Origin: Oopsacas minuta | Lineage: Eukaryota; Animalia; Porifera | DNA: 64,000 nucleotides | Direction: 5' to 3' | Assembly: GCA_024704765.1 (NCBI GenBank) | Contig: JAKMXF010000345.1 | Coordinates: forward strand, 124,001-188,000 | In this document: in pieces, positions 1,353 through 47,328 of the stretch | Layout: each line of letters begins with the position of its first letter | Position numbering within the stretch: the first letter of the stretch is position 1 | The notes under the pieces: model-generated | Database searches by the model: none | The model's input: only the letters and a program-made list of their open reading frames with translations | Told to the model about the DNA's origin: nothing | Made by a program: the position numbers and the translations under genes

Positions 1353-1372
1353 ACAAAGGCCATTCGCCTTTA

Positions 1373-1730: not shown

Positions 1731-1864
1731 TAGTTATTAGTATTATTTTGTTGTTGACTTTCTTTATTCATGCTTGTTTGTTAGCAACAACAGTTAGTCA
1801 TATATACTTTTGATTCATTAAATGTATAGAGTAAAATGAAATTTGGGTTTGTTTATTTCTATTA

Positions 1865-2025
1865 CAGTGTAACTTCCACAAACGGGGAACTTCTGGAAAC
1901 GGATTCGAAAAGGAATAGAGCGAATCTCATACAAATGAACCTCAACGAACGCGGAATTTGGCAGAAACTGCGGACTAGGTAGCAATTTTCGACGTTCTTA
2001 CACAACGTTTGTGGAAGCTACACTG
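1865..2025. mobile_element. Tc1/mariner-like MITE, family A (CAGTGTAAC(C/T)TCCAC...GTGGA(G/A)G(T/C)TACACTG)
   Basis: Terminal inverted repeats flanked by TA on both sides, no coding capacity. Related copies near 6481, 11833-11988, 20691-20817, 29930-30064, 35203-35337, 42657-42736, 53026-53112, 53580-53629, 56181-56333, 57365-57490 and 59682-59849. Confidence 0.8.
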
Positions 2026-2762
2026 TATTTTGCAATGGTAATATTTCATTCGCCAACTGTCCTGCTATTTACGGTCGTCTCCATTTATTCGGATATGGGA
2101 TTCTTGCTGAAACCTTAACAAAAATCGAAATGGTGCCGATTTTCCCTGCGTGAGACTAATATACTTGCTATCACCTTTTACGAATTTCCCGTGGCTTTCA
2201 AGTCAAATCCAGATTTATCAATATTTCCAGTAACTTCACGTTTCCTCCTTATTCCAACCGAAAATGTCCATAAATATTTCCAAAAATATCCCCGAGATTA
2301 TTCAAAATGTACTTCCTCTATGGATCTATGCTAATCCGTTCACCCATTCATGAAATCGTGGAAAACTGAGAAATTTATAGTTTCTATTTCCAGAGAGATA
2401 TAACTTTACTCGAAGGTGAAGCCTATATCTTTGCCAACTGCTTTTCGTTTCAGTAATATGCTCAAATGCTTCCAAAACCGAACGTTTTATTCATTACTTT
2501 ATGAGTTTCTCATGACTGCCATAGTAGATATTCGTATAAGAGCATGGTGAGGTCTTTTGACGAATCTTTCTAATCTTATTATGAGAGGGAAACGAAATAT
2601 TATTCTTACCATTTGCTATTCGGTTGTTAATACAATAATGTATGAAGTTGCGGCGTAACGTATTGAGGTATAATTTCTAACTGACATTTCCCAGAATTTT
2701 ATGATAATTTACACTATAATATATTCTATTTTCCCCCCAAAATATCAATATTTCCCAGTCAA

Positions 2763-10768: not shown

Positions 10769-11548
10769 GTTTAGATAATTTCTTTGAATACAAACAAATA
10801 TGCAATTTGATACTTTTGTTACGAATTTATAATATTCTGGAATCAAATCTGTATATTCACATGATGTCTTACGTAACTCGAACTACGATGGAAACTATGA
10901 GAACTATTGGGATTACTCTCCAACCAAAAAAATGTAAGATCCTTTCTTGTACTCCAATTGATGAGAACAGAATTTTATTATTATTTACGAATATGGAATT
11001 TCAACTGTCTTATATACCTTCAAAACGGAAATATATTCTTGAAGCAGAGGCGTAGCCAAGGTGGTCCGCACCGGTGCTTCACACCATCACCGATTTCTGA
11101 AGGGCCACCTCAGGTGGTGCATATTTTATGGTGATCCGCACCAGTGCATGTGTTGTGGGCACAATTTATGAGACTGATAAACAAATTGTTTCAAATGTTT
11201 GTTTATATTAACAAATACGCCGAGCTTTATTAACTGAAAATATTCTCTTGTGTGAATACTACATATGTAACCAGCGCACCTCCATAAGTTATATCCTTGC
11301 TACGTCACTGTCTTGATTTATATTTAAATTAGCTATTTGTTGAATATTATGAGTATAATCCCATTCATAAGTAGCTATCGATTCCAGAGACCGAACCAAA
11401 TCTAGCAACATTGTATACGCGTACACATCAAACTATCTAATACAGTGCAACATTTCTATTATATTATACGTATGTAGAATACCATCTGCACAGTTTATAG
11501 AATTTTTCAACTAACAGTTTATTTGATATTGAATAGCAATAGTACGTC

Positions 11549-14500: not shown

Positions 14501-17113
14501 GAAATGTTGCCAGATGATGGATGTGTTCACAAAGTTCATGGCACAAACTTGAAGGTTCATGCCGTATGCCATTTTCTTACCAAAAAACAATTCATTCCAA
14601 AACTAAAAGTTTGTGCCAAAGTTCTTGGTACATGTCAAGTTGATGCCAAAAGTCAAAAGTTCATCCCAAATTCATGCTATAATCAATAACTTAAGTCCAA
14701 AGTCAAAATTCGCGCCAAAGTCCAAGCCAGAGCCAAAAATCTATGAACTTTATTTATAATCTTGCAGTACTGAACGCTTGCTACTCAGCTGATAATACAC
14801 ATTTCCTTTTAGGTACAACTCTCAAGATCAAACTAAGTTTCAATGACATATACACTTCAAATCACACAACATTAAACTTCACTGTACAATTAGAAGATAC
14901 AATAACTGACATAGCTTTACGTAAAGCTATTCTATTGAAGCATTTTGTTGATCTGCATAATGATTATGTTATGGAAAAGAAGGGAGTTATACATTTGGAG
15001 AGATTTCAGTCTTTTAAGAAACATTTGATGCAAGAGATGGAAGATGTCAAGGATAATTCTCTTCTTTATAATAATGCAGGTATATTTATACATAACATTA
15101 AAGGAGCGCAGTCCATATTTGTAGGACGCACACGCTGGAGCACGCTCCTATTTAATTGCAAAGAATTTACAAATTTCATCGTTATTCTGCATGAATTCAG
15201 TATTCTTGCTATAAAAAGTGACTGCTATGACACTTTTGTATAATTCACAATTTATTGAAAGGTTTGACTTTGCACATTTAGTAATTTCCCGAATGTACAA
15301 TGGTTAATTCAATCCTGATTACTTAAAATACAAATCTAATGAAAATCTGAAAGAATGAAAAGGAGCGGATTGGAGCGTGCTCCTTTTTTTCTGGAGTTCG
15401 ATCCGGAGCGCACTCCTTTTCTGAGCGGAGGTGGGAGCGCCTCTCCTTTACAGGGCTGGAGCGTGCTCCAAAAATGAGGAGCACTTAATGCTCTATGTTT
15501 ATGCCAAATATTGTACAATGGAAGCTGGTTATAACAACCTCCTTATGAGTAGCAATGTGTTCTTATGACCGGAATCCAGTGTTTACAGGTTACTCTGAAT
15601 AACGGATACTGCAGGATAGGGCCTGTGAAATCGCTGATAGAAAGAACTTTATATTGACATTATATTTTGGCATTTATTCCTATTTTGATGGGCCAGATTT
15701 TTGCCCTTTTCTGCCTTGTCCTTTCGAGTCGTATTTTGCACGGATTTCCCAAGCTAATACGCGAAATTATGTTTATGTCCCTGAAAAAACTTGCTAATAG
15801 GCGAACGTACTGGATTATATTTCAATTCTAGTTTACATGGAGATGACTGATAAGATAATTGATCTTGAATTAAAGCACCAGAAGAACCCTTCATCATCAA
15901 AAGTTTCTATACCAGGTGTTAATACCAGTAAATTCAGGCCTTCTTTCTCTCTATCTCCTCCTGCCAGCACTTTAAAGGGGAAAACTAAGAATAAGGTAAT
16001 TATCAAAAATCACAATAGTCAAGTCCTGTTGTAACGAACATGGATATATCAAATCCCACGAAGTCTGAAATTGTACAAATATGGTCACAAACCCTCAAAA
16101 ATACCATAAATCTCATCGGCTATATCGAACTCTGCTTGTGACGGCGTAATTATCGCGGTTCCTTGAGTTCCTTCTATATTCTGGAAGCATATTTAAGGGG
16201 CCGTTTAGACCTCAAGTAATGCTTTCAATGATGAATCGTTTTGTATTGAAATAGACTTCACATTGGGAGAGGCTTATATACAGGAATTTAGCTTTTTTAC
16301 GAAACCTTTGAACTTGTCCTAAAATTTAGTTTCTTATGGAAAAACTAAAGGTATGGATAATTCAAATGCCTTACGAGTAAGTTCCTGAGGCGTAACCATG
16401 GTGGCGAAACCTCACTTCTAGTGCTGGCTCTTCCCCTCAAGTAACATTACATTTATACTATATGTACATTTTCATAGGCCCCGAAGCGAATTACAGCATC
16501 GAAAGGTAGAAAAACTAAAAAGGCAACTCCAGTCAAAGCAACCAAGAAACCCACACTAATAAAGCCCAAAGTTACTTTCAAAATCGAGCCGATCAAAGTA
16601 GAACCACCTGACACGAAACCTGTACTTCCTACACGAGTTTCTACTAGAAAGAGATCTGCTCCAATGGATTATATGGCTATAAGTCCAAATAAGAAAATGT
16701 AAGTAGTTTTATTTAGAAATGATGACGTGATATATGAAGGCATTAAAATTTGATAATTATTTGTGGTAAAGCCAGACGTATGCAGTTCAGACTCATGAAC
16801 CTAATTGAGCCAATGAGTTGATGCCATTTGTCCTATTTACCTGCATATTTGATGAAATACCAAAGCATCCAATAATACATTATTTTATGCAATTCTATTC
16901 TTCAGGAAAATAGCTATAAAAGCTAAGTCGCCAGTAAAGAAATTGGCAAAAAGAAATACAGTTAAAGTGCCCGTCAAAAAGTTAGCTAAGAAAACTTCAG
17001 CAAAAGCAGCAGCCACAAAGTTGACTGGTGCAAGGAAAAAAGTTGATAAAAATGTAAAAATTGGCGTGAAAAGGATTCCCAACAAGGATAGAATTCGAAA
17101 GAGGATATATTGA
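11549..17113 (+). CDS. Histone H3 N-terminal-tail / vWA (MIDAS) / histone-H1-like basic tail fusion protein, 9 exons, about 666 aa
   Basis: Exons 11549-11795, 12204-12484, 12956-13097, 13343-13534, 14133-14411, 14813-15079, 15832-15995, 16478-16698 and 16906-17113. All are GT-AG with matching phases, total 2001 nt. Starts MARTKQTARKSSGGKAPRKLLACK. vWA motifs: NLNIVLVIDISGSM, GLIAFDD, RGMTDL, RIIFMTD, TTVVGIGMDFN. Lys/Ala/Pro-rich C-terminus. Confidence 0.8.
13678..13772. repeat. Foldback inverted repeat (about 45-bp arms) in intron 4 of the H3-vWA gene
   Basis: atcaccaaaagg...cttaagaaaaaattcatacc / ggtatgaatttttcttaag...cctttttggtgat are near reverse complements. Confidence 0.7.
15103..15486. 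repeat. Repeated quasi-palindromic GGAGCG(T/C)(G/A)CTCC motifs in intron 6 of the H3-vWA gene
   Basis: About seven copies (for example near 15103, 15137, 15372, 15405, 15435 and 15458), forming a GC-rich patch in AT-rich DNA. Confidence 0.6.
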
Positions 17114-17678
17114 ATGAAGTGCCTTGAATCCTTGCATGCGAGTTTTATACTTTACTTATCAGTTTTAGATTTTTCACATTTATTTTCTATTTTTTGTGGC
17201 TAGTTTTGATGCCTTTATTTTCGATAATTCCTTACTTTTGTTGAAAAACTGACTACAAATGTCTGTCTTCTTGAATTTGATATTATTTATATAACATTCA
17301 GTTTCGGATATGTTAACATTTCCTCTATACTCTTAAATACTGGGAAACCTCGATAATTATTAAAAAAACGGTTAATTCTAATTTCCGTGGAAAAACTGGC
17401 AAATATTACACAAAATCCTACAACGATGGTTATTCAATAGGTATTATTCCGGATAAAGTGAACACATTTTGATCGTTCATTCGTGTTCATATTTACGATA
17501 TTCCATTAAATATGTCATAACTAACAATGCAAGAAGATAATATATGAGTTGTCTCTTCCATTTTGTTTTTTGGACAAATTACAAGTTGATTCACGAATGA
17601 ATATTTAAGTCATATGCTTGTTCATGAGTTGCATGATTATAAACTAGAGAAATCCTGTGAAATTGTCGCTATAATCCT

Positions 17679-20627
17679 ATGGGCCTTACCAGAAGGAAGA
17701 AGAAACGAACTCATATTTCTACTGAACCAGGCAAGAAGGGTGATGTTGGAGAACGTGCTGGTAACGTCCTTCCTGATTCTGTGAAGAAACCGCCAGCATG
17801 CTTCATAATTGGTGAGTAAATATAATTATACTTATATGACAGGTTTGGGTATGCACTATGCTGATATTTTTTGACAATTTCCTCTGCAGTTTTACAAATG
17901 TTTGGTCGCTTTACACTTCCTCATAAATTTGCGTTGAATTTTTCAGAGTGCTTCCAGACCACATTGGCGTTACTTACAATATACAATATATAAATTGTTC
18001 GAACATTTGATTATGCCTTGAAAAAATGTAATTCCCACTTTATTTCGCCTATTAGGTAGAGGTCAACTGAACATATATCTCCAACAACTAATATCAGATC
18101 TGAAATTTGTCTACGAACCAAATACTGCATCAAATTTGAAAACTACGAAAAAGAATTCTCTACGAGATTTCCTACATGTTGCTGGCCCTTTGGGTGTCTC
18201 ACATTGCATTGTACTTAACTTCTCAGGAAATGCGCCTACAATACGCTTCGCAAGATTCCCACATGGCCCAACGGTAACCTTTAAAGTTCTAGAATATTCT
18301 TTAATGAGAGATGTTGTGTCGTCACAAAAACGGCCGAAAATTATTCAAGATCTTCATTTAAATTCTCCTCTATTAGTATTGAGTCAGTTTAATGAGCAAA
18401 TTGTGACGGAGAATGAAGGTAAGTTCATTTTTCTATTGAAACTGAGGTTTTCGGGAATTTGTTGGCGGGCACGTGCCGTTTGCGAAATTCCAGCATTCTT
18501 CGAAATATTTCCTGGATCTTCAAGTTTTAGATACATAAATAGCAATATCAAGGCTAATATTTAGGAGAAAGTACATATGTTTGCGACTATTTCTCTGGAT
18601 TCTTGTAAATTCCCGTGATAATCCATCGATCGCGCCCATTTTTCGGAGGATATTTATTTCTCCGAGCGTAAATTTCATATAAATTAATTCTTCTACAGAC
18701 TCAATAGAACCAGATTCTGTAAAGCAAATTACTCCACGTTGCCTCAAACTATTATCTACAATGCTACAGAATATGTTCCCTTCCCTCAACGTACATAATG
18801 TAAAACTGAAGCAGGTTTGTGTGTAATGTACGTGTTGAATATAGTTACAATCTGTGCCGCGGCCGGAAAGTATATAAATGGCAATATACGATATAATTTT
18901 AGCTCCAACGCACTTAGTGCCTAGAATTTATAGTGCCATTTTAAATACATTTAATTAACATTCAAGACAGTTGGTACAGATTATACATTTGTTTGGCTCA
19001 ACCATAATGTTGAAAATACACTTAGTGCCTAGAATTAAGTGCCATTTTAAGTAAATTTAATTAATACTCTAAGCTGTCCGCACAGATTATTAAGTTTTTG
19101 CTCAACCATAATACAAACATACACTTAGTGCCTAGAATTTATAGTGCCATTTTAAGAATTTAATTAATACTCTAAGCTGTCAGCACAGATTGTAAATTTA
19201 GACTTTTCAAAAAATGGAAGTTTTTAAGAAGTTTGCATAGTAATTATTGATACAATTATGGTGGCGTCATTATTATCATGGCCAATCCATTCCACTTGAA
19301 TTACACTTCACAGGTAAAGCGATGTGTTCTATTCCATTACGATGCCGCCTCCAATCAAATCCATCTACGTCACTACTGTATTAAAACTAGTCCTCAAGGC
19401 ATACGTAAACAGGTTGATAGGCTAGCTAGACATAAGATACCGTCTCTAGCCAAGTATGATGATATTAGTGATTATCTTATGAGGGAGAATCTGTCTGAGA
19501 GCGAGCCTGACGATTTACCAGAGGCTCAGGTTAGTTTTAGAATATGTATTCCTACTCCCAAGAGGCAATATAGATTGGTCCGCACCATGAAAATACACCT
19601 TTTCTAGGTTATACTACCACAATCTTTACCTGGAGCTGGAAACAAAATATCTCAGAGAAGTAAAATACGTCTCTACGAGTTAGGCCCACGATTAACTCTA
19701 TCTCTGATTAAAATACAAGATTCTTTGTTTGATGGGGAAGTTCTCTACCACATGTATGTTCATAAATCTAAAGAAGAGATTGCTTTCATGAGGAAGGAGA
19801 AGGCAAGGATCATAAATGAAAAGGTATAATATATGGATCACAGTTCTATTGCTTTCGTAAGATTACAATCTGTGCCGACAGCATAATGCATCAAATGCTA
19901 TACTATGCTGTAGGCACAGTTTGTAATTTTTTACTCAAAATGCATAGCAAAAATCTTGTACGTTGAAATGTGCAAATTGCCTTGGAATTTATAAATATTT
20001 TCTTCTTTGTAATTATAGACAAGACGACGTAAATTACAAGAAGCTAATGTTAGACGTAAAGAAGAAGAAAAACAGATACACCGTAAGAGAACTTTAGCAG
20101 GAATGCGAGCACATAATCAGAAGGATACAGAGTATAGTAGTGATGATGACTTTGAGTATTATAGACAAGAAGTTGGTGAGGATCCTAGCAATGAGTTGTT
20201 ACTTTCCAAAGCTAAACGAGTGAAATTTGATACAAATAATGGAGATTTTTCTGATGATGAACAAAGTAAAAGACCTAATTTCCGCAGCGGAAAGTCAAGT
20301 TTTCGAGGTGGAAAGCGAGATTTTGGTGGTGCAGAGCGAAAGTTCCATGGCGGTAACAAACGAAATTTTCACGAAAATGGCAAAGTTGGGAGAATTGATA
20401 GACATCGAGGTTTTAAAAAATCAGAAAATGGTTCTCAATTTCGCGCGAAGAGTTATTTTCAAGGCCGTGAAGGATCAAATTTTAGAGATAGAAAGGGTAG
20501 AAATAATTTCACAGACAGTAGTGCACGGGGAGGAAAATTCGGGAACAGTAATAGTGCGAAAGAAAAGTACAGCAAACCACGGAAGGCACCAGGCGGTAGA
20601 GTCTTTAGAGTTAGAAAACGAAATTAA
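17679..20627 (+). CDS. PPAN: Peter Pan / Suppressor of SWI4 (Ssf1) Brix-domain ribosome biogenesis protein, multi-exon
   Basis: Start MGLTRRKKKRTH at 17679. Motifs YEPNTASNLKTTKKNSLRDFLHVAGPLGVSH, RFPHGPTVTFKVLEYSLMRDV and ELGPRLTLSLIKIQDSLFDGEVLYH. Basic Gly/Arg/Phe-rich C-terminus ends at 20627. Confidence 0.93.
18911..19195. repeat. Minisatellite, about 2.7 copies of a 103-108 bp unit, in a PPAN intron
   Basis: cacttagtgcctagaatt...gtgccattttaa recurs at about 18911, 19019 and 19122, and the intervening sequences are also similar. Confidence 0.85.
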
Positions 20628-20829
20628 TTGATGATACAATTATAGCGATATTTCTCAATTTATAGCTTTCAATTGAAATTCCACATTCTATAGTGTAACC
20701 TCCACAACGGGCAACTTCTGGAAACGGAGTGAAAAGTAATAGAGCGAATTCCTAGCCTCATACAAACAGAGTACCATTTTCGGCGGCCCTGACACTCCGT
20801 TTGTGGAGATTACACTGTTTTAGATTTCA

Positions 20830-32413: not shown

Positions 32414-32828
32414 CTATAGACTGTGATAAATTACCCAACAAATATTTCGTATATTCGCTCTTTATGGCAAAATTAATAAATCACTTTTTGTAATATTATC
32501 TGTGTATATGTTGAGCTATTACATCTCTACTGAAATGTCCGCGGAGAATTGTCCCCACAGTAAATTACACCCTCTGTTATACTCCTATGGTGAGATGTAT
32601 GTTTAATGTTTTAGATTGAAATATTGCAGAAATTCTTTTTTTTGCTGTCGGCACAGGTAATTTGGATTTTATGCGCGCACTCTGCTCGCATATTCAAATA
32701 GTCATGTGTATGCATCTATGGGTGTCTATTTTCACTTGATATCCTTCAAGTGTATATTTTTAATACTTTTGGCGATGTTTCATATTTTCACACCTTTTCA
32801 AAGATCATTTAGATTAGATTAGATTCAT

Positions 32829-35800
32829 ATGGCTGAAAAAGATTTATATTTTCAAGGATTAAGCATTCTATTTATCAATTCAGGGCTTATTAAAGCAAGA
32901 GCGAACATTCTTAAGAAACAACTAGAAAAATTTGGCGGTACTTTCTCATCAAAATACATACCATCAGCCACTACACACATCCTTACAGTACCAAATATAA
33001 CAAAAAGTTCATTTGAAAAGGAATTAGAATTAAAAATTGATGAAATAAAATGCCCAATTTTGAATGTTGAATGGTTAAGTGTGTGCTTAACAAAATCAAA
33101 ATTACATACAGAAGCAGGATTTTTGCATGATTTTAAGTCAGAATTAAACAACGAAAAAACTCACACACCCGCGGTTCCTGTAAAAAATGTTACAATTCCG
33201 AAGCCAGTGGAAGCGCCCCCTGAATTGTACCCACAGGGAGAAACCGTGTTGGGTATGAAGCGGAAATTATATGATAGTGATGATGATTCTAAAGATTCTG
33301 TGGATTTTAATACGAACACTAAGAAGTATCTTTATCCACAAGTTGTGAGAGGGAAAAATACAGCGGGTATGTTGAGAATTTAAAATCTGGAGGGACAGAG
33401 CCAGGTTTATAAAATAATTTGTAATAAATCATATGACTCATATCCCTTGTTCTGGTATTCTTACAACTTAACACCGGTATCTATCACTTTTCACATTTTC
33501 ACTTTGTATCTCAATATGTTATTGTTACATACCACAGGTAGATGGAAGCAAAACAAACCAAGTTATTCAAATTCAGAACAGAAATCGACTATTATTGATC
33601 AATTGGATTCTGATAGTGATTATAATACTACCACTGATGATGATGATGATGTCAGAGGGAATGTGAATTTTACATTTGGCGATAATCAACTAGAAAAAGG
33701 GAAGCAGATTGAATATTCACCCCCGAAGCGAAAATTGGTAATAATACACAGTGGATGCTGGCTGAATGAACACCCTTGGGAGTAGCAATATATACTCTTA
33801 TAACCAGCATAAATATACATGAATATATGCAACTGTTTTTCAGGGCATAGTTCTTATAACCTGCATCCACTGATATATGTATATGTGACGTATTATCTTA
33901 AGTACAGTGGAGTTCGTCTATTAACAATCGTATTTTCCTTGCTAAATGCGCGAATTTGCGATTATGCGAAATATATGCAAAATACACTATATGTTCATGA
34001 ATAGGCAGATTTTAGATCTACGTTTATCTGCTTGCTTATTTTTTAAAGAATCTACTGTATTTTTTAGAAAGGCTTCTCTTGTATGACTGGGAAATCACAA
34101 CTTCCTACTAACTACAACAAACACATTACAGATAAATTAGAAGAATTAGCCGTGTTATATAAAGCGCGAGGAGAGAATTGGAAAGAGAGAAGTTATTCAA
34201 AAGCTGTAGCCGTGTTAAAGAAACATCCAAAGGAGGTTACGTCATGGGAGGAGGCTAAGAATTTACCATGCATTGGTAGGCTAGAATAGTTTGTGTTAAT
34301 TTTCGCCGCTGATAACGAGTTTCATACCTGAAAAGTTAAAACTGATAGAAAATGATAACTTTTAAAAATCTGCGAATATACATGCAAAATGTCAGTGGCG
34401 AGTATTCGCGAAATTTACCATTTATCAAGTCGAATCCTCGCAATTACACGGTTTAGAAATTCGCATGAAATATCACTCTAAATCAGGGACGGTCCCACTG
34501 TAATCGGTTAATAGGGTGCCGGTTAATTTGGTCACTTGTCCTAAACAGACCCATGTAAATAGGATCAAATTGCAACGTTTAATCGGGGCAAAATTCCTGA
34601 TCCCAAGCGAAGCATGGTCTACTGTATTACAAATGTATTTGACATTATTGTATTTAGGAGAAAGTTTAGCTGACAAAGTTTGGGAAATTATATCAAGTGG
34701 GAGATTAAGGAAACTCGACCACTTGTCAGAAGATAAAGATACCAGCTCAATATCTCTATTCTCTAACCTATGGGGAGCTGGGCTTGTGACTGCTAATAAA
34801 TGGTTTGCACAAGGTTATCGAACTTTAGATGATATCAGAGAGAAGGCTGAGCTAACAAGGTAAGTAATTAGAATATACAATAAACTCCCGTTATGTCGAA
34901 GCTCAAGGGACCGCGAAAGTTACTTCGATATAACCGATGTAATATATGCTACTTTGACTGTTTGGGACCATATTTGTATAATTACAGACTTCGATATATC
35001 CGTGTTCGTTATAACTGGGGTGTATACAATATTTACAATGAATAATATTGAGATAAAATTTCCTATTTTTTTGGCTATTTTCTGATATATTTTTGTGGGA
35101 ATTTCTTAACATATTATATTCAGATTTTAGAGATTAGGCAATGGATATTCATGAAATAGCTTAAACGGTTGTGTTAATTGGATTTTCCTGTAATTATATA
35201 TACAGCGAATCTCTACAAATGTGGCCTGTGGCAACGGAGTGAAAATACAAGGAACGAATTCCTAGTGCCACAAAGTGCACCTCCCAAAACGGAAACGGGG
35301 AGCATTTGCGGCGTCCCCGTTTATGGAGGTTACACTGTATTTACATAATTCACAAATGGAAATGCCAGCTAGAAATTCCTTTTTCCTAACACTATTCCCA
35401 GGCAACAACAAGTTGGTATGAAGTATTACGAAGAATTTATTGAAAGAATCCCACGTGTAGAAGTAATAGAAATAGAGGATATTGTTAAGGAAGTAATCCA
35501 TGGCATAAATCCTGGTCTAATCCTTGTTACTTGTGGTTCATTTCGTAGAGGGAAAAGTACGTGTGGTGACGTAGATTGTCTGATATCACATCCTGATGGT
35601 AAATCACATAAGGGAGTATTTCAACAGGTATATTTGATGTTTTATTGGCATTTATAGTGTATTTGAGTATTTCTTAATTGATGCACCTTGTCGATTAATA
35701 ACATACTTATTAATACAAAACGGACACTCCGAGAAGTGGACAATCCCTCTACAACGGACAAACCTCCTGGAATGAATTAGCAATCATATATGTAATACTT

Positions 35801-37359
35801 TAGCAGTCTCCGAGAAGCGGACAACTCTCTAAAACGGACAGAAGAGATGTCCTCAGCGTACCCGTTATTCGGAGACCCTACTGCATATCAAAAATTCCCC
35901 TTGTGTAGTTCAATTATATTCTCACAATATCATTGAACTTTTCAAATCAGATAAAATTAAATTTTTCACAAGTCCTCAATAGCATAATCTCGTCTCAGGA
36001 ACATCCGTCTATTTCTAAGCAATTTCCTACTCAAGTATGACACAATTGCATTTATCATAAGAGTTTCACAGTTGTTGCATAGTTAACACTTTCAATATGT
36101 TGGTATACATGCAGCAGCCAAATTTTAACACCGCAATCATTTGATATTTTTATTTATACACACAACATATATGTTTACTACGTATGCCACACATGGTTTG
36201 ACACTGATATAAGATCTCAGACGTTTCCTCACATCACATCATCAGTGGTGTTTGTTTACAAAAGACTTTTTGGATTTATCCAGAATGATTAGATATGACG
36301 TAATACCATTATTATTATTATTATTATCATAGACTATAAATATTATGAAAATTTATATTTCCTGTCACAGAGTTTGAATTTATTTATTCAAATTGTTTTG
36401 GGATATCTATGACATTCCTTCTCGTTGCTATTTCACGTTTTCCCCCTATTCCTGAAATACAGTAAATGCTGTTTCAACGACTATTCTGGGGTAATCGAGT
36501 ATGCTGAAGCCGAATATGGGATTGTAAACAATATATTGTGAATATTTGTTTACTTTATCTACCTAAAAGTAAACAAATATTCACAATATCTTGTTTACAA
36601 TATCATATTTGGACTCAGCATGCTCGATTACCCCAGGATAGTCGTTATAAGACCCCCCTTGGGGGAAGCAATACATGTTGTTATAACCGGAATACATTGT
36701 AATATTCATTGAAATGAATTTGTACTTCATTTTCGTATCCATAGATATTACAGAAAGGTCATGACATGGACTTCTTAACAGATGATCTATCTATCCATGA
36801 TGGAGGAGATCACAATCAATCAAAGTATTTAGGTGTATGTTTACTGAAGGGAGATAACCGTAAGCATAGGAGACTTGATATTATTGTTGTGCCTTATGCT
36901 CAATGGGCTTGTGCTATACTATATTTCACTGGTTCTGCTCACTTTAATCGATCTTTGAGGCTTTATGCACAGAAGCAAGGTATGTAATGTATGATATATA
37001 ATCGGGTTTATTTCCTGATTTATACACTCATAATTCAGTGTTGCCAGATGGTTTGCTCTGAAATTTCAATTCTTGACATAAGTCAAAAGTGCTTGCCAAA
37101 GCGAAAATCTATGAACTTTGCTCCTGACCTGGTAACACTGATCCTGATTATAGTAAATACCCCAATACTCGAAGGTTTCGGAAACAATTTCATTTATCCT
37201 ATAGGAATGCATCTATCAGAACACCATCTCTGCACAGATGTAATGCGTAAAGGCACAACGATAATACACGAAGGCACAATACTACCCACATTCACTGAGC
37301 AAGATATATTCCTGCATTTGGGTTTGGATTATCTAGAACCACATGATCGGGATAAATAG
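32829..37359 (+). CDS. POLL: DNA polymerase lambda (family X; BRCT - Ser/Pro-rich - 8 kDa lyase - catalytic core), multi-exon
   Basis: N-terminal BRCT ([13 protein letters not shown]...THIL...[10 protein letters not shown]). Motifs [63 protein letters not shown] and [20 protein letters not shown]. Confidence 0.95.
36476..36646. repeat. Long near-perfect hairpin (about 80-bp arms, about 8-nt loop) in a POLL intron
   Basis: Left arm acgactattctggggtaatcgag...gtttacttt pairs with aaagtaaac...ctcgattaccccaggatagtcgt with about 8 non-Watson-Crick positions. The ggggtaatcgag end also occurs at about 13841, 13948 and 21294. Confidence 0.85.
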
Positions 37360-37799
37360 TAGCTGTAAATATAATTCATAGTTTTTGTACATCCGTGATT
37401 TAAGGGATTTGTGTATTTATCAAAGGTTTGTTAAGAATATTCTTTATGATTGTTCATGCTGAATTCTTTTCATTTTAGTTTACATGACGTAATACTATTT
37501 CATACTTACCAACCACTTACATTAATTTCCCCTGAGTTTCAGGTCTCTCACGATTTCGGGCCTACTAATACTGCAAAGTCCCTGGTCCTTACACAAAACT
37601 CTAATACTAAATAGACATCTCACGATAGAATCGTGCCAAATGCCGCGAAAAGTGCCAATATACATTGGAACCTTATTAATACGAATACTCAAATTTGTTT
37701 GCTTCATCCATAGTTCGTATTAACGAGATTCTACCGTTAAAGCAGTTTATAAATATTCTATTTCTATGAGAACTAGCTTATAATAATATTTCTATGAAT

Positions 37800-39763
37800 A
37801 TGAGTTTACATCCAAGAGATAGAGATATTTTCCTACAACTTGAAAATGATCATTTTCGTGATATCAGCGAAATTGAGATCATAAGTCGCGAAGTCAAACA
37901 TGAATTCGATAAATTTCACAAAGAATTGACCCAGAAAGAATATGATATTGTGAGAGAAATTAACAAAATCCGCGATAAAATTGTTGAAGATTTTAACCAA
38001 AAAAAGAACCGTTTATTTGATACTACAAACCAATATCGCGAAATTCAACACGATTTAGGAGTATCTACACATGTGAACATTTTGTGGAAGAAAAACGGTT
38101 TGGCGATAAATGATATCTGCGAAATACAGTCCTCACAGAGACGGCGATCACACTCAATTTCCTCAGCAACAAATCCTTATGGCGACCTCATAATAATGTT
38201 AAATTCCGCTCGTCAGGTTCAAAGTTCAATCCAAGCAATTGCAATGGAATATCCACCGGAAATGCACTCAACAGCAAGACAGCTGATCCACAACAAACAA
38301 CATAAATATCATATCCTACCTGTTTATGAGCTGATACAACATAATTTGAAATGTAATACGAAGATGGTTGATATACAAGATGGACTGCACTCTTTGTCAA
38401 AGTATGTGATTTGTTTGTTCTTTGATCCAAGCAGGACTATCTTTCATACGATACAGGTAAGTGTTTTTGTTATTTCTCTTACCTTTGTGACTAATAAATA
38501 CATTCTGAGATGGCATTATTTCTTACAGGGACTCTGTTACCAACTCCCTATATTTCTTTTCCGACAATTTCCCTGAATTCCAAGTTTTACATTAATAGCG
38601 ATTTCAGGTTTTTATTTTTGGAAAACAAGCGCATGAATTGCAATTTTTCATGGATTCTCAAGTTTTTTAATGAGACCCTCTGAGAGGGGGCCAGTAGATC
38701 CATTTGGCTTCAAAAACATTTCATCGTATGACCATATTAGGGTATTATATATTCATTTGGGGAAGATAGCAAAATGACTTGGCCTCTACGATCCTGTCAG
38801 AGTCAATCCGCGGGAAGGTTTGGCAAATATACTCACTACGCTCCCGTAAAATGTTTATTGTTAAATATCTAATAAGCATTTTGAGCGGACAATTTTCGTC
38901 ATAACAGCCCCTATGAAGTGCAACTGCTATATGCAAAAATATGTTATCTAATTGTGTTCTTATTCATATAGACTGACTCAGAATACCACAGAACTCTTAT
39001 TTCAAACAAAATAGTAGGCTACGATAAAATTCTACACAGAATTGATTACCAATACAATCACACTACCCAATTCTATACAATCGACCAACATCTACTGTCT
39101 ACTCCTCAATATCTTCATAAACTAGCTTCCATCTGCTGTGAACTTCTATTAGCTGTTGAGGAATTGAGATATTTTCAGGAGAACACCGATCTGAATCGTC
39201 TCGATCTTCTGACCTACTTTTCACCACCCCCCTTAGTTCATGACTTTGAAATAAACGCATCGGTATGTCCAATAACAGCCTTAGATGTTTGCGCTTCAGG
39301 TCGTGATGCAAGCCTTTTATCACAGAATAGTGATTCATTTGGTTCTCCGATACAATCATTAAACTATCAACGTTCAAAAGCTAAACTCTATTCCGATAAT
39401 GATACACCAAATTCCAGTGTATCTGATACGCAATACAATAGTCGTACATCAAATTGTAGTGGCGATATTCTCCAGTCACGTGATAGATATGACGTAGTTG
39501 AACCAGCTCCCACTGTTACGCAGGATAAATTCACCTCAACAGCCTTTAATTTAATCGAAGATACGAATCTATACTCAATCTCTGATCCTGGAAATAATGA
39601 TATGGCTAAACAAGATCGCGGAAATCCACGCGGTTTATTACAGAATCCACCCAGGAAAGTTGATTCTAGTCCAAGTATTGGTTGTAAAATTTGCCCTAAA
39701 TGTAACAAAGAGACATCTATTTCATATTTAGCTTGTGAATGGTGTCGTGCTTATGTCTCTTAA
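37800..39763 (+). CDS. Coiled-coil + PUB-like + C4 zinc-ribbon protein (cluster gene A), 2 exons, about 482 aa
   Basis: Exons 37800-38456 and 38972-39763, phase 0. PUB-like IQDGLHSLSKYVICLFF...FHTIQ|TDSEYHRTLISNKIVGYDKILHRIDY...LASICCELLLAVEEL. Ends CPKC...CEWCRAYVS*. Confidence 0.75.
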
Positions 39764-40149
39764 TTCTTGTAATTTATTTATATTTCAAACTTTTGATATA
39801 ATTCATGTTTGTTTTCCTATTTTCTTCTGTTCTGAATGATAATTATTAATATAAGGATTTTCATATGATTTCTATAGGGAAATATTTTATTGAGCTGTTT
39901 TATGCGAAATAGACCATGGACCATGTGTACTGTTATAAGAAGAGTTGTCCTCCTATATCTTATCGAATATTTAACCACGGATGTTGGATTTCGTATTTCT
40001 CCTTGAATGTTATTCAAAAGCTATTTCGAGATATTCCCTCTTTCTTGGTTTGGGTAGTTCACATGGATTATTGGCTATGCAGGCTTGGATGTTGTTCAAG
40101 GATATTTTGATGAGGTGATTTTCTATAATACATAATATATACGAAATCC

Positions 40150-40390
40150 ACCATCCATTGTTAAATATCTAATAGGAGGAACCATTTTTGTCAAACTGTA
40201 CTCGGGTTAAAACTATGTTTTGGCTAAATGCTGTTCCTATATGCTTATTAGCCATTTAACCATGGATGGTTTATTTAGCATATTTTGTGTCCTATACAAA
40301 TCACCCTTCCAATGAAGCGAAGAGTGCTTCAAAATGACGTTGAACAACTTCCAAGCAGATATCACCATCCATGGTTAAATAGCTAATAAT
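40150..40390. repeat. Interspersed repeat with inverted taaccatggatgg / ccatccatggtta ends
   Basis: A related copy lies in opposite orientation at about 44740-44900, with a fragment near 47620-47765. Confidence 0.55.
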
Positions 40391-40583
40391 CATATAGGAG
40401 AGAATTTTCTTCTTAACAAGATCATTGGACCATGGATCATACTGTAGAACTCTTTCGGATATATCGAAATGATTCTTTCCCCAATATAGCGTGAAATAAA
40501 TTGATCCATGGTTCAAATATGATTCTCCATTGGGTATATATTTCAATTTATTTGAGTGAATAAAGGTTATTTCTTGATAACTA

Positions 40584-41348
40584 ATGGCTATGGAGATTGA
40601 AGGAACATTTGATGGCAAAATTTCATTCAAAATACGTATACAAAATGCTAGAGATGAAATACAATCCAAATACCTAGAATTTCATTCACAATTGACAAAA
40701 GAAGAATCGCGGCTTATAACAAGACTTGATGACATTGAATCTGAGGTCTTAGAAACTTTCGAGAAATATAGCACATCTCTAAATGAAATTACGAAAGCGA
40801 GAGAACAAATACTCTCAATTTTCAAGACAAATACCACAAATCGTGATCTGCTTAGAAACAATTTGGAAATATACGACAAAGAAATACAAGCTATAAAAGA
40901 AAACACGAAAATTGAAAATATTATCAATTTAGAGTGGGATATCAAACCGATTGAGATTAATTGCCTGATCCAAACTAAAAATTGCCCTCCACAAACGACA
41001 CAGCACGCCATACCGCAATTATTGAAGCAAGTGTCGTCACCCTTACCAAATACTCTCGATTCGAAGTACCAACGTTTGAATTCATACCAGGGAAATGCCC
41101 CTCGTAAACATTTTATGAAAATGCCGAAACAAACTGAATGGGAATGTCCACATTGTACAACTTTGAATTCTATGAGCAACCACTATTGTGAAATTTGTTA
41201 TAAGACCCCGCGTTATAAGATTGACAAGCAAAGTGGAAAGCCGAATATTCCACATGGAACGAAGTATTGTCGTCGTTGTAACCAGGCTAATCGCTATCAG
41301 GACCAGATATGTGCTTATTGTGGACTATGGTTGGTACATATGAATTAG
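40584..41348 (+). CDS. Coiled-coil + NZF/RanBP2-type zinc finger + C4 zinc ribbon protein (cluster gene B), intronless, 254 aa
   Basis: Heptad-rich N-terminus. EWECPHCTTLN-x6-CEIC followed by CRRC-x10-CAYC. Confidence 0.8.
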   Translation: MAMEIEGTFDGKISFKIRIQNARDEIQSKYLEFHSQLTKEESRLITRLDDIESEVLETFEKYSTSLNEITKAREQILSIFKTNTTNRDLLRNNLEIYDKEIQAIKENTKIENIINLEWDIKPIEINCLIQTKNCPPQTTQHAIPQLLKQVSSPLPNTLDSKYQRLNSYQGNAPRKHFMKMPKQTEWECPHCTTLNSMSNHYCEICYKTPRYKIDKQSGKPNIPHGTKYCRRCNQANRYQDQICAYCGLWLVHMN

Positions 41349-41722
41349 TTGGTGTGGGTATTTTGAGTTGGATTTTGTTTCATATATTTTTGTGAATATT
41401 TAGCCAAATGTTTGTCTCTCGTTGGGGGTGTACAGGTCCATTTGTATACTTTCATAGGTCATCAGGGCTCTCAACTTGGAAACTTCAAAATCTCACGATT
41501 CTATCTTGGGATATGCAATTTAGTATTATTTTCTATTATTACAATACCCAATTCTTCTGCAGTATTTGTAGACCCGAAATGGTGAGCGTTGAGAGCCCAG
41601 GTTATCTAGAACTCCGCATAAGTCGAAGGTATTATTGCTGTCCCTTGAGTTTCGATGTAACGGGAGTTGAGTGTATTTTGAGTACATATTTCTATGTTAA
41701 TTTTAGAATTCTAGCTTTGACC

Positions 41723-42472
41723 ATGGCTCAATCTCCACAAATTTCCGAAACGACATTACAAACTATTACAGAATTTCAAACACGAATACAATCATACAGA
41801 GCTGAAATCAAAAACAAAATTTCACAAATCATCGGTCAACTCAAAAACGAGGAAAATCAACTTTTATCGAAACTCGATGATATTGAAAAGGAAGTTCTCG
41901 ATAAATACAAAATAGCCAGTTCGACATTAGCCGAAATTACCAAAGCCAGAGAACATATACTCGGTGTATTGAAGAGTAATACCACTAGTACTTTACTGAA
42001 AAATAACTTAGAATTGTATGATAAAGAGATTGAAAATATCAAGAAAAATTCGATAATTTCTTCTACGAACATTCAGTTAAAATGGAATATTAATAATATT
42101 GAAAATATTTGTGTAATTTCGAAATTGATTGATGAAAACCGTGAAAATATTATAAATTCTAAGTGTGTAGAAACTGATAAAAGATCCGTAGTCTATACTG
42201 AATATCTTAAGCCTCTAAAACCGAAATTTCAAGTGCCTGAACCCAATTGTCAAAACAAAAATTTATTAAAATTAAACAGACATTTAGTAAACCTAGAAGA
42301 TAACATATTCTCTCCAGATTACTCTACTGACAAGCCCAATAATACGATTACAGAACCACAATATACTAATTTATCCTTGAAAAGAGAATGGGTATGTCCT
42401 AATTGCACATATTATAATGATCCTAGCCTTACAAAATGTGGAATGTGTTCATACCTTAGACAGAACTACTAA
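41723..42472 (+). CDS. Coiled-coil + single NZF zinc finger protein (cluster gene C), intronless, about 249 aa
   Basis: Start MAQSPQ at 41723. Coiled coil paralogous to gene B (ITKAREHIL, LLKNNLELYDKEI). C-terminal EWVCPNCTYYNDPSLTKCGMC. Confidence 0.8.
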   Translation: MAQSPQISETTLQTITEFQTRIQSYRAEIKNKISQIIGQLKNEENQLLSKLDDIEKEVLDKYKIASSTLAEITKAREHILGVLKSNTTSTLLKNNLELYDKEIENIKKNSIISSTNIQLKWNINNIENICVISKLIDENRENIINSKCVETDKRSVVYTEYLKPLKPKFQVPEPNCQNKNLLKLNRHLVNLEDNIFSPDYSTDKPNNTITEPQYTNLSLKREWVCPNCTYYNDPSLTKCGMCSYLRQNY

Positions 42473-42867
42473 TTAAGTTTGTGTATATTTTATTAACTAT
42501 AGTTGTGATGACGTAACTTTGTTATTATATTAGAGAATATTATTATCACCAAATTATATTTTTATAATAACAAATACTTATATTTCATTAAGAACCGATG
42601 CTAACTTGGCAGAGTTCGATATATTAGTGAATCTTTCCAATTATTCTTTGATAGAATATAACCTCCACGAACGGGGGATTTGACAGATACCAGGGATTTT
42701 CGACGTCCCTGGTACACTGTTTGTGGAGGTTACACGCGAAATATTGCCCCGACTGCCGCGTCACCTTCCACCGAATACATATATTGTTTGTAGTTAACTA
42801 TAAATTTTGATAACAGAACCATGGATAACTAATTCCATTCAAATTATATTATTAGCATAGAGTACGC

Positions 42868-45800
42868 ATGACTGGCTACACAGATCCAACAATCAAAGAT
42901 GAAACTTTTAGAATCCTGAGAGATCTTGAACGTGCTATCACTGATGATTCAAAGCGAACACGTGAAATCGTAAAAACAGAATTCACCGAGTTGAAACGAA
43001 AAGTTACAGAATTTGAATTAGAAAAATTGGACTATATAAATCAAATTGAATCCGAGAAGAAAGCTCAAATATCAACCATTCGTTCTCAGCATGATGGCTT
43101 GAAAATGGCTCAATCATTTTCCGCGCAAAATAACCCAGAAATCACCAAAAAATTCAGTGAATTGGAAAAAGACCTCAATCGATTACGTAACAGTATGATG
43201 AGTAAGCAAATTAACATAGACATCAATAAAGTTGAAGTATTCGATCAATTGCAACTTTTCTGCAACACAAACTATGGAGTGCCACCAGGGACGCAAACAA
43301 TCCCCCCACCCTATGCTGTCCCACAACAGAAACTCATCATACAAGAAACGCTGGATAAAGTCCACTCAGAAAGCCGAATGCCAGCCGAAAAATTAGAATC
43401 CATCGAGGGATTTATCCGGTTTGTCCTTACATTTAAATCCTCCGAATATAAGCCAACGCTTACTAGTAATATTCCCATTGAAATAGCAAACGAGGCTAAA
43501 AGGTACGTTAAAGTCGAAAATAAATATACTATGGCTAATTTCTATGATATTATGCTGCGTACTATGAAGGAAGGTAAGTCAATGAAGAATATCTGTGCTG
43601 GTTTTGAGAATTTGGCGAAGATGTGTAATTGTGTTTATTTTGATTCTCACAGTGATGAAACTAAAATTATTAAGGTAAGTGAAGACCAAAGTCCATGATT
43701 CATGTCAAAATTCATTGCAAATTCTTGTCATAAGGGAAAGGTCAAAATCTATGAACTCTGTTTATTATCTGGCATGAACCAAACAGAAAATCGTCGATTT
43801 TGGACCAGGGATTGCAGAAACGGAGTTTTGAATTATGCAGTTCTACAATTATGTAATACTTTAGCAAGCCAAATGCCCTTTTTAGCAGTTTACTAATTAC
43901 AAATAATAATCGCGGCCGTATCCCTAGTCCAATCCACAATTTCCTATGTAAAGTAGCTAATCGCTTGTCAAAAACATGTCCATATATGGTAGTGATATAT
44001 TTTATATACTTTTAGGTTGATGGCCCATTTTATAAACAAGGCATAAGCAATAACCTCTGCTCTACAGATGATATACTACGTCTCCTCGGCTATGAAAATA
44101 GGATACAATTTTGGCAATTTAACAAGCCTCAAAATGTAAAGAAATTCGAAGCACAGATTGAGCGTTTGTTTTGTGAATTGTGTATTCTTGTACAAGAATC
44201 TATTGCCATAGAAAAGCAGATAAAAAAGGAGAAATATAACGAATATATTTTACAGAAGATAGATACACAGGTTGTACCGAATTTACCAACACCGGTAGGG
44301 ATGGTAAAACCGGTCGCGCCGGATCCAGTTGAAAAACCAAATCCGGTTGAAGGAGCAAGACCTGTCTCTCCAGAAGATGACGAGGAGCAATACGCATTTT
44401 CAGAGTTATTAGTCGCGATCGATGCTCTGGGGACACAAGACCAAAAATACACTACGTCACTCGCAGAGGCTAATCCAGACGAATTCCTTGAATTAGCCAA
44501 AAAATGCATAAATCTACCTGTACAAAAGAAATACCAGAATATCGACATGTATAAGGTTATACATGGTAATGTATTGAACCATAAGCAAGTTGGAGAGATT
44601 AAGATAGGATTGGTGGGTGTATTTAAGTATGCATTAAACCAATACGTTGATGCACAATTACCTGAAATTCAATTACTTTTGGTAAGCTATATAACTGCTT
44701 GTTATGACCAAATGGCCCCTCTATATGCTTATTAGTTATGTAACCATGGATGGCGGTTTTAGTTTATCTGCTTGAATGTTGTTCTAAGTCATTTTGAGGC
44801 ACTCTGCTTGATCGGAAGGGAGAATTTGCATGGAATTTATAAATATCCTAAATTCACCATCCATGGTTAAATATCTAATAAGCATATAGACAAAAATTTT
44901 GTCAAACAGCATAAAATGACCCTATAAGGAGAGGTGGTCTCAGGATCTGGATACCCGCGGCAAATCATCAGTTTACCACTGCGACCGTGCCATTACCAGT
45001 CTGCTGTATATATGATTATACGTATGCAGCCAACTCCCATTATATTTAACACGGATATCTCGGAATACCCGCTTATATCAAAGTCTGAAATTGTACAAAT
45101 ATGGTGCCAACTGTCAAAAGTCACATATATTTCATGGGTTTTATCGAAGTAATTTAGCGATCCCTTGAGCTGTTTTTGTATTTATATAATCAATATTTAT
45201 TGGTTGTGCATTTCCTATAGTATGATAAAGATCCTTTTCATTCACTTGTCTCGAGTAAGATGATAAACTCGGAAGAAATTTTCCTGAAGCTAGGCTATCT
45301 CAAAATGTCAGAAGGACAAGGAATGCAGCTCAAGGAGGCTGTTGATGATAGAACCACACGTTTGCATAATGTATCTCTTATTTGCTGTGAGCTTTTAATT
45401 GCAATACAGGAATTGTCAGAATTTGGAAATACTGATCAGAATCCGTTGAAATATTTTGATACTAATAAGGATCAAAGTGTTAAATCTTCAATTCCAGAAC
45501 CAGCACCACGAAAATCAATGCCAAATATTCTACCACCACCAGCACAAGGGTTTGGTCCAATTCAAAGTATCCCTAAACAAGGATCTGGTCCAATTCAAAG
45601 TATCCCTAAACAAGGATCTGGTCCAATATCAAATATACCACCACCCCTAGAACTTGGCCAAATGGTGAATATTCCACAATCACAATCACAAGGATATGGT
45701 CCAGTACAAAATATTCCCCCTAAGGAAGGATTAGAGCCAATACATCCATCACGGCCACAACAAGGATCTGGTCCCATACAATTTATTCCACAACCAATAG

Positions 45801-47328
45801 GACCTGGTCAAATGCCGAATATGCCCCAATCACAATCACAAGGTTCTGGCCAAATTCAAAATATCGATCCACAACAACAACAATGGATGAGCCAGTTGCC
45901 TCAGCGATCTCTACAACAACAGAATGCTCCCCCTCCACAAAATTTTGGCCCATTCCATTCTTTTCAAGGCCCGCACCCTTCTTTGAATTTACTTCAGGGA
46001 TTTGAGAAACTTCGTGAAACTTTATCAAATTTCAAGCTTCAAACTGCAATACCCTCGCATTTAATTGACCTTGCGCGTGCTTGTCTGCCTCTTTCAGCAA
46101 AGGATAAATACGCACTTGGTATCATTTGTGAAATAGTTTTGCAAAATCTGAAGCATAATACACCAATTGTTCAAATTCGTGAAGGTATAGAATGGCTTGC
46201 CAAATATTGTATTTGTATATTTCTTCGTGTATCAGATAGAGAAGTACTCACCCTAAAGGTTTGTGTTTTTATATTTTATGTATTTTTATAGCAAAATTCA
46301 GAAAATTTAGTGCACATTTCTGAAAGATGCCAAAATCAAAGTTTTCGCCAATTTCAGTAGGAAAGCCAAAAAATACAAAGGAATTTGCATTTTCAGAAAT
46401 GTACACAATTTCTTTGAATAATTATTTATTCTTAATATGAAAATTCAATATTTTCGGCACATGAATTTGTTAGCCAAAATATTTTGGGGTCTGCACAGAT
46501 CTAACTTTTATATTTCTATATGTATTTATTTAGGAAAGTGGGTCTCTTTTCTTTCGAGAGATTTGTGCACGGATCAAGATAACAAATAATATATTCACGC
46601 ATCTTGGTTATGAGTATTTAGAAACAGATAGATCTTTTTACCTAAAAGCGGAATTATTTGAAAATCCAGCCAACTTAAATAGATTAATAGAAACTGGATG
46701 TGATTGCCTTCTTGCCATGCAGGATTTAATTGCTTATGAACATATTGGACATGGCAAATTCATTGAGTTTTTCCAACAGTATACCCCCAATCCAACTCAC
46801 GAAAATATGCCAGCTGAAATGCCAACACAATCTCGCCAATATGCTGAACCACCCACTGAAAATTTGCCCGCCAAAAATCTATCTTTTGCCGACCTATCAG
46901 GCCCAATACCTCCACCACATCCAACACAATCATATTCGTCGAATCCACCAAGGGACCAGAGTTTTAGTATTCCTGTGCAGTCGCAGCCTCCATATAGTTC
47001 AGTATACGATCATAACAGGCCATACCAAGAACTCCCTTATGATCAAAGTGTAAATTCCCAATATTATCAACAGCAAAAGCAACAACAACTCCAAAAGCCA
47101 TACCCAAGGTCAATTGCTGGTCAACAACGTTGGCAATGTCCGCACTGTACAAGCTTCAATCCTATTAATATATCTTTCTGTGAAGTGTGCTACAAAACGC
47201 CTGACTACAGGCTTGATACCGAATCACCTCCACGTACAAATCCTAGCACGAAGTTATGTCCCCGGTGTAGACAACCAAATCGTATGCAGGATATTAGCTG
47301 TACTGGATGTGGTGCTAATTTTATGTGA
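42868..47328 (+). CDS. Coiled-coil + 3x PUB-like + Pro/Gln/Gly-rich linkers + NZF + C4 zinc ribbon protein (cluster gene D), 4 exons, about 1101 aa
   Basis: Exons 42868-43674, 44016-44681, 45221-46258 and 46534-47328, all phase 0, total 3306 nt. This joins four ORFs of the track into one frame. Three repeats of a helical PUB-like unit. C-terminal WQCPHCTSFN-x6-CEVCYKTP...CPRC-x10-CTGC. Confidence 0.75.

Follow-up and report, generated by a model that had tools for sequence, protein, structure and literature searches.

The locus examined here raises the question of what kind of proteins are encoded by four adjacent genes of the glass sponge Oopsacas minuta, all on the plus strand and spanning positions 37794-47328 of a stretch of 64,000 nucleotides (assembly GCA_024704765.1, contig JAKMXF010000345.1; the whole stretch is referred to as the window, and positions follow its numbering). 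The genes are called A to D below, and the GenBank proteins of A (LOD99_8873) and D (LOD99_8875) are both named "hypothetical protein". A first-pass annotation, made from the sequence alone, described the cluster as a module of ubiquitin adaptors similar to LUBAC, the complex that assembles linear ubiquitin chains, in which PUB-like helical units and NZF fingers follow coiled coils and a ligase domain is missing. We find that the PUB assignment is well founded, and that the nearest kin of the cluster is a sponge SPATA2-like gene, not HOIP. The reading that we favour, with a probability of roughly 0.6, is that the SPATA2/tamozhennic family has expanded in glass sponges specifically and that the cluster represents this expansion. 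Only a small number of PUB domains exist, and those of PNGase, UBXD1, HOIP and SPATA2 have been studied in detail; we know of no characterised protein with more than one PUB in the same chain or with a PUB behind a coiled coil. The SPATA2 family itself is already known; the architectures of coiled coil plus PUB and of three PUBs in a row are new here.

Identity and descent of the PUB units

Gene A encodes one helical unit (38241..39184; residues ~150-292), interrupted by an intron at 38457-38971. Gene D encodes three, each likewise with an intron inside: D1 (43468..44228; residues 201-340; intron 43675-44015), D2 (44472..45430; residues 422-561; intron 44682-45220) and D3 (46043..46740; residues 766-906; intron 46259-46533). 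A hidden Markov model built without any D sequence recovers exactly three full-length units in D, with hmmsearch scores of 45, 59 and 68 bits, respectively. Single exons compared with PDB sequences by phmmer give chance matches only. A profile of cluster units and orthologue halves only (A4) matches the SPATA2 PUB (5LJM) at E 1.9e-6 and the UBXD1 PUB (6SAP) at E 2.6e-4, and with kin added (A3) these values become 4.2e-8 and 8.5e-6, with a block of HOIP/RNF31 PUB entries at E 0.11.

Structure prediction leads to the same assignment. The AlphaFold2 model of A residues 140-300 has a predicted local distance difference test (pLDDT) value of 86.6 and a predicted template modelling score (pTM) of 0.82. 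In a Foldseek search of the PDB, its best match is 5LJM, with a template modelling (TM) score of 0.64 and a root-mean-square deviation of 2.9 Å over 144 columns, followed by the PUBs of UBXD1, HOIP and PNGase, and the top 31 matches are PUBs without exception (31/31). In the Swiss-Prot part of AFDB, four vertebrate SPATA2 proteins, tamozhennic and SPATA2L rank at the top. D1, which diverges most among the units, was modelled as residues 165-350 of the D protein (pLDDT 85.8) and again finds 5LJM first (E 5.5e-4) and HOIP PUBs second; across the A and D1 models, TM to 5LJM is 0.63-0.64. Language-model and ESM-structure neighbours concur on PUB, and the structural match in the Atlas is a SPATA2-like cluster. 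Profile and predicted fold thus agree that the repeated helical unit is a true PUB domain, of the extended kind seen in SPATA2 and HOIP, as the first-pass annotation had recognised from its sequence pattern.

The closest relative of these units is found on another O. minuta contig. LOD99_6040 (KAI6650363.1) is a protein of 1248 amino acids (aa) with an N-terminal PUB, long repeat arrays and, at the C-terminus, an NZF and a C4 zinc ribbon. It passes the Pfam family PF21388 (SPATA2_PUB-like) with 31.8-34.3 bits against a cut-off of 27, and its PUB shares 42% identity with the A unit (E 4e-39). The gene has a single intron, in phase 0, exactly at the position in the PUB where A, D1, D2 and D3 are split, and B and D have finger-plus-ribbon modules that align with its own. 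The shared position and phase of the PUB intron, together with the PUB identity, imply that the cluster units and LOD99_6040 descend from a common intron-bearing ancestor. The triple PUB of D arose when a genomic segment was duplicated together with its intron. By its kinship with LOD99_6040, the cluster is SPATA2-like and not LUBAC-like; HOIP is reached by profile at E 0.11 only.

The distribution of the family agrees with the lineage specificity proposed in the first-pass annotation. With a profile of A exon 2, a search of 1.84 billion representative sequences to E 1e-3 gave no match outside sponge-derived (hexactinellid) sequences, and word-indexed searches within a length window returned only open reading frame fragments of other hexactinellid contigs. 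On these searches, the family appears lineage-specific and restricted, so far, to glass sponges. A word-indexed search with the finger-plus-ribbon module of LOD99_6040 found none outside sponges, a result that is uninformative on whether the combination of PUB and NZF is ancestral. In the literature, we found no report linking O. minuta to SPATA2, CYLD or LUBAC, and none on a zinc finger in vertebrate SPATA2.

Pocket residues, zinc fingers and N-terminal modules

Binding of the PUB-interacting motif (PIM) by PNGase, UBXD1 and HOIP requires a pocket of the form YxxN(x)9Y and a further Asn (PMC6995525). The PIMs of p97, OTULIN and SPATA2 depend on this pocket (PMC6995525, PMC5031558). In HOIP, Asn102 has been described as the "cornerstone" residue, and the PUB of SPATA2 lacks PIM binding (PMC5031558). 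The pocket residues of the sponge units were located by mapping the cluster alignment onto the UBXD1 and SPATA2 profile alignments, and the mapping is supported by its recovery of the published Tyr-to-Val change in SPATA2. The three positions read Y..C..F in A, M..C..T in D1, Y..N..I in D2 and Y..C..V in D3, compared to Y..C..F in LOD99_6040 and V..N..F in SPATA2. The second Asn, which contacts the PIM carboxylate, is replaced by Ser in A, Gly in D1, Lys in D2 and Gly in D3. Since the complete motif is present in none of the four window units (0/4), docking of the p97/OTULIN type is predicted to be unlikely, and recruitment of p97, which the first-pass annotation suggested together with that of deubiquitinases, is weakened in this form. 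The client of the window PUBs is expected to be a protein partner that is bound independently of a PIM. The divergent pocket residues amount to testable predictions on which PUBs still bind PIM peptides.

The first finger of B (41139-41198), C (42389-42448) and D (47131-47190) belongs to the RanBP2/NZF fold, in which the Trp, the four Cys and the Asn are invariant in 10/10 aligned fingers. The C finger scores 26.6 bits against the Pfam RanBP zinc finger (cut-off 27), and the finger profile matches RanBP2, the Npl4 NZF (the best single finger, 32.8 bits, E 5.6e-7) and the NZFs of HOIL-1L, HOIP, TAB2/3 and TRABID. In a survey that counts 15 human NZF domains, an NZF proper is defined by Thr-(Phe/Tyr) and a hydrophobic residue in the second CxxC, which bind the Ile44 patch of ubiquitin (PMC11372445). 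Among B, C and D, this motif occurs only in C (Thr-Tyr, with Met as the hydrophobic residue); LOD99_6040 also has it (Thr-Tyr, with Ile). Where Thr-Phe would stand, B carries Thr-Thr and D carries Thr-Ser, and the hydrophobic position of the second CxxC is kept in both. By these residues, the fingers of B and D are strictly RanBP2-like and not NZFs proper, and ubiquitin binding of the standard kind is predicted only for the C finger, the one with the motif. The sensing of ubiquitin chains by NZFs, as envisaged in the first-pass annotation, can accordingly be retained as a prediction for C and not for B and D.

The second C4 element of A (39683..39745; residues 459-479), B (41268-41321) and D (47257-47310) is a zinc ribbon with conserved ligands. 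The A ribbon has a weak likeness to the second finger of D; its four Cys do not vary among three orthologues and are all present in five A-type sequences. The C-terminal modules of B and D are 49% identical. The domain layouts of the first-pass annotation are therefore sustained for the PUBs (one in A and three in D), for the ribbons of A, B and D and for the finger family of B, C and D, with NZF in the strict sense confined to C and the coiled coils as a probable reading of the sequence.

Towards the N-terminus, all four proteins have ~100 residues nearly devoid of Pro and Gly, ~40% charged and with heptad contrast, from which we infer a coiled coil. In A, the module occupies 37851..38129 (residues ~20-112) and ends in a W...ICEI motif. 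The A-type and B/C-type N-termini are homologous (hhalign probability 86%, E 5e-6), including the terminal W...ICE motif. For the N-terminus of D, comparison with the A or B/C modules gave hhalign probabilities of at most 9%, by which homology is not demonstrated; it probably belongs to the same module. Pfam yields weak matches to ARA70 and CALCOCO1 in the N-terminal region. No Pfam match to RING, RBR/IBR or UBA was obtained in any of A to D, in agreement with the ligase-free character noted at first, and neither a B-box nor a RING precedes the coiled coil in the four gene models or upstream of them.

Between the PUB and the ribbon, A has an otherwise disordered linker (39200-39680) in which short motifs are kept in five hexactinellid sequences at ~45% overall identity. 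These are CPITD..D.CAS.RDA, DTPNSSLSDTQY, F..AF and [NE][LF][YF]S[IL], and they are candidate docking or phosphorylation sites. The last of them, NLYS in A, lies ~130 aa past the PUB and is shared by the five A-type sequences; it is loosely PIM-like, with Asp and Tyr not invariant. A reading of this motif as a strict PIM or as an LC3-interacting region was dropped, as the key residues vary.

Gene structures, expression and neighbourhood

The gene models were assembled from splice sites read in the genomic sequence; the window has ~35% G+C and the genes are spliced. Gene A consists of two exons (37794..38456 and 38972..39763; 484 aa) separated by the phase 0 intron, which has GT..AG borders, and encodes a coiled coil, one PUB, the linker and a C4 ribbon. 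Gene B (40584..41348) is a single exon of 254 aa with coiled coil, RanBP2-type finger and C4 ribbon, and gene C (41723..42472; 249 aa) has a coiled coil and an NZF. Gene D (42868..43674, 44016..44681, 45221..46258 and 46534..47328; 1101 aa) encodes a coiled coil, three PUBs, a RanBP2-type finger and a C4 ribbon. The four adjacent plus-strand genes with these layouts, as outlined in the first-pass annotation, could all be modelled, and the spliced products of A (P0003) and D (P0011) are identical to LOD99_8873 and LOD99_8875. In the GenBank annotation, B and C form one product of 525 aa (40584-42472). This model looks like a merge of two genes, because the frame of B is closed by a stop codon once its finger-plus-ribbon module is complete, that of C opens with a separate ATG and a full N-terminal module, and the B/C-like genes on two related contigs are separate reading frames. 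An exact look-up of the B sequence returned no record, as GenBank joins it with C. The reading frames are intact in 4/4 genes.

Of four public runs from one sample, X4 behaves as RNA and the other three as DNA. In X4, depth is in the thousands over the exons of C and D, and ~0-20 in the C-D spacer and in introns 1 and 3 of D; it is higher in intron 2 of D, the site of a high-copy repeat. The X4 contigs support all three D introns, the first by a joint (43672->44014), the second by loose ends at 44681/45220 and the third by loose ends at 46259/46532. Genes C and D are thus clearly expressed, and D is correctly spliced. Of the junctions for which RNA confirmation had been called for, those of D are hereby supported, and that of A is as read from the genomic sequence. 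The finding that 81% of sampled words of B, the spacer and C are present in X4 is compatible with B also being expressed.

Several additional features of D were noted. In intron 2, at 44722-45105, DNA word depth rises from ~70-170 to 1,000-4,300 in 3/3 DNA runs, and loose ends are numerous at 44848-44889 and at 45064-45105; this high-copy repeat is probably a dispersed mobile element or a miniature inverted-repeat transposable element. A 33-bp tandem repeat at 45544-45633 (2.7 copies, 94% matches) encodes GSGPIQSIPKQ and sits in a Pro/Gln-rich linker of D together with several looser copies of the form G-x-G-P-[IV]-Q-x-I-P. At 46586 the X4 contigs have G where the window has A, and at 47062 they have C where it has T, with no variant at these positions in the three DNA runs. 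Each mismatch is seen in one contig, 32-35 letters from the contig end, and may reflect an allele, an error or RNA editing.

Directly upstream of A lies a gene for a polymerase of the Pol X family (~32800-37359; 587 aa) with BRCT, HHH_8, lambda fingers, palm and thumb. The neighbourhood of Pol X and A is conserved on two other hexactinellid contigs from ENA assemblies (L001 and L002), where the number of B/C-like copies varies. On L001, six tandem B/C-like genes follow the A orthologue (11259-20761), and a tree of the B/C-type module shows that the duplications are species-specific. The tandem copies on L001 point to rapid birth and death. Two of them, at 13885-14703 and 16936-17703, are near-identical, and an ENDIL-type peptide repeat replaces the finger in the second. 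L002 carries a D-like gene with two PUBs and then a C-like gene. There (13073-14164), no stop separates the exon with the second half of PUB2 from a following coiled coil of the B type, with the finger lost and the ribbon truncated; the reading frame represents either a natural fusion of cluster members or a decaying copy.

Interpretation and comparison with known systems

An expansion of the SPATA2/tamozhennic family would have started from the layout kept in LOD99_6040, in which a long disordered region links an extended PUB to an NZF and a C4 ribbon. These modules would then have been recombined behind a common N-terminal coiled-coil module of ~110-130 aa, giving rise to coiled coil-PUB-ribbon in A, coiled coil-finger-ribbon in B, coiled coil-NZF in C and coiled coil-three PUBs-finger-ribbon in D. 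The coiled coils may form homo- or hetero-oligomers, and the PUB units may dock a protein partner independently of a PIM, by analogy with the SPATA2 PUB and the USP domain of CYLD. The C finger would bind the Ile44 patch of ubiquitin, and the fingers of B and D, without the Thr-Phe (TF) motif, may bind something else, e.g. a helical partner, as proposed for the TF-less zinc finger of HOIP. Taken together, the set could provide scaffolds, themselves non-catalytic, by which a PUB client is brought to complexes that carry ubiquitin.

Several observations weigh against this reading. Pfam, applied to exon pieces, full proteins and excised units, gives no PUB or SPATA2_PUB-like match even at E <= 10, and the window units thus fall below the gathering threshold for the PUB superfamily (PF09409 / PF21388). 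The SPATA2 residues Y114/T115, which matter for CYLD binding (PMC5031558), correspond to D/S in A, D/G in D1, D/K in D2 and S/G in D3, with F/S in LOD99_6040, and because they are not conserved, CYLD is not predicted as the client from sequence. The ubiquitin-sensing part of the reading is carried by the finger of C, the TF aromatic residue being missing in B and D. Finally, the coiled coil has a TRIM-like look, which is a language-model lead: B-box/RING (TRIM) and NCOA4/ARA70 clusters predominate among the neighbours found for the B module and for A residues 1-300, with scores of at most 0.86 and few shared features. That Pfam misses these PUBs and that GenBank calls the proteins hypothetical also means that the PUB call is a real annotation gain for an early-branching animal.

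The same observations have to be set against other explanations of the locus. The proteins could be canonical PUB adaptors that recruit p97, OTULIN and other PIM proteins to ubiquitin chains, i.e. a LUBAC accessory module. The PUB fold is common to HOIP, PNGase and UBXD1, and the first pocket Tyr is kept in A, D2 and D3, with the Asn also kept in D2. However, the YxxN(x)9Y motif essential for PIM binding (PMC6995525) is incomplete in all units, the Asn of D2 is Cys in the L002 orthologue, and the nearest solved relative, SPATA2, is without PIM binding (PMC5031558), and we regard such a role as quite unlikely. The RanBP2-type fingers might instead bind Ran or nucleoporin-type partners and not ubiquitin, making the proteins adaptors linked to nuclear transport. 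This would fit the strongest whole-sequence matches of the finger profile (RanBP2/Nup358 and Nup153), the appearance of tamozhennic, with its reported role in nuclear import of Dorsal in Drosophila, as structural neighbour of the PUB and the lack of a TF motif in B and D. It is made improbable by the fact that eight repeats add up to the RanBP2 score, whereas the best single finger is the NZF of Npl4 at 32.8 bits, and that 3/3 fingers keep the Thr and the hydrophobic residue of the second CxxC where RanBP2 fingers have Leu-Val.

A further explanation takes the N-terminal module as its starting point and considers the proteins as TRIM-derived decoys, in which an antiparallel TRIM coiled coil, freed of RING and B-box, heterodimerises with TRIM ligases that supply the ligase in trans. 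The language-model neighbours and the weak Pfam matches to ARA70 and CALCOCO1 speak for such an origin, but the low scores with few shared features come without profile or fold evidence, and B-box and RING exons are absent from the gene models and upstream, which leaves it a poor prospect. Decay of functionless duplicates, for its part, could account for the loss of different modules in different copies and for the D-like frame of L002 that enters a B-like part without a finger and with a truncated ribbon. It is hardly credible for the window genes, considering that all four frames are intact, that C and D are strongly expressed with D correctly spliced, and that zinc ligands, PUB core and several linker motifs are conserved between species at 40-50% overall identity.

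If the SPATA2/tamozhennic expansion is taken as the starting point, a doubtful extension is that the cluster constitutes a combinatorial "split SPATA2" toolkit. PUB-only (A), ubiquitin-reader-only (C), TF-less (B) and multi-PUB (D) subunits would mix via the shared coiled coil, and subunit choice would tune valency and clients, providing a sponge-specific route to the bridges between deubiquitinases and ubiquitin chains that are formed in vertebrates by LUBAC, SPATA2 and CYLD. In that case, the fast birth and death of B/C copies between species would resemble an immune-type arms race. In mammals, the family serves to recruit CYLD, a deubiquitinase, to complexes of immune signalling; that the sponge proteins have a part in immunity or NF-kB signalling, as raised in the first-pass annotation, is pure inference. 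Vertebrate SPATA2 has, to our knowledge, no NZF. If this holds, direct reading of ubiquitin may have been a property of SPATA2 in its ancestral form, and this would bear on the evolution of the CYLD/LUBAC axis.

Comparison with known systems places the cluster among several families that share some of its parts. TAB2/TAB3 resemble B and C in having a coiled coil and a C-terminal finger of the NZF family, and their NZFs are matched by the finger profile, whereas the sponge proteins are without a CUE domain, the coiled coils have no detectable homology and B has no TF motif. HOIP/RNF31 has an extended PUB and RanBP2/NZF fingers in one chain and provides the second-best structural matches for D1, but UBA, RBR-LDD and the cornerstone Asn102 are missing from the sponge proteins, and the profile E-value is 0.11. 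Drosophila tamozhennic (Tamo), whose function is tied to import of Dorsal (reference 100 in PMC5413910), has a SPATA2-family PUB and is a structural neighbour with TM 0.69; it differs in that reports mention neither a coiled coil nor a multi-PUB layout. LOD99_6040 is alike in its PUB, its phase 0 intron site and the finger-plus-ribbon also found in B and D, and differs in having no N-terminal coiled coil, one PUB, long repeat arrays, a Thr-Tyr NZF and a PUB that passes PF21388, unlike the cluster units. The best profile and structure match is SPATA2/SPATA2L (5LJM), with the same extended non-canonical PUB. In both, the second pocket Tyr is not kept, consistent with a PIM-independent pocket, and SPATA2 is a non-catalytic adaptor, as the sponge proteins are likely to be. 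SPATA2 also has a PIM of its own (Asp-Leu-Tyr-Thr), by which it docks into the PUB of HOIP. The sponge proteins are without a clear DLYT-type PIM, A having only the loosely similar [NE][LF][YF]S[IL], the pocket Asn is Cys in 3/4 of their units, and Y114/T115 are not kept. What they add to the SPATA2 plan is an N-terminal coiled coil, C-terminal zinc fingers and, in D, a series of three PUBs.

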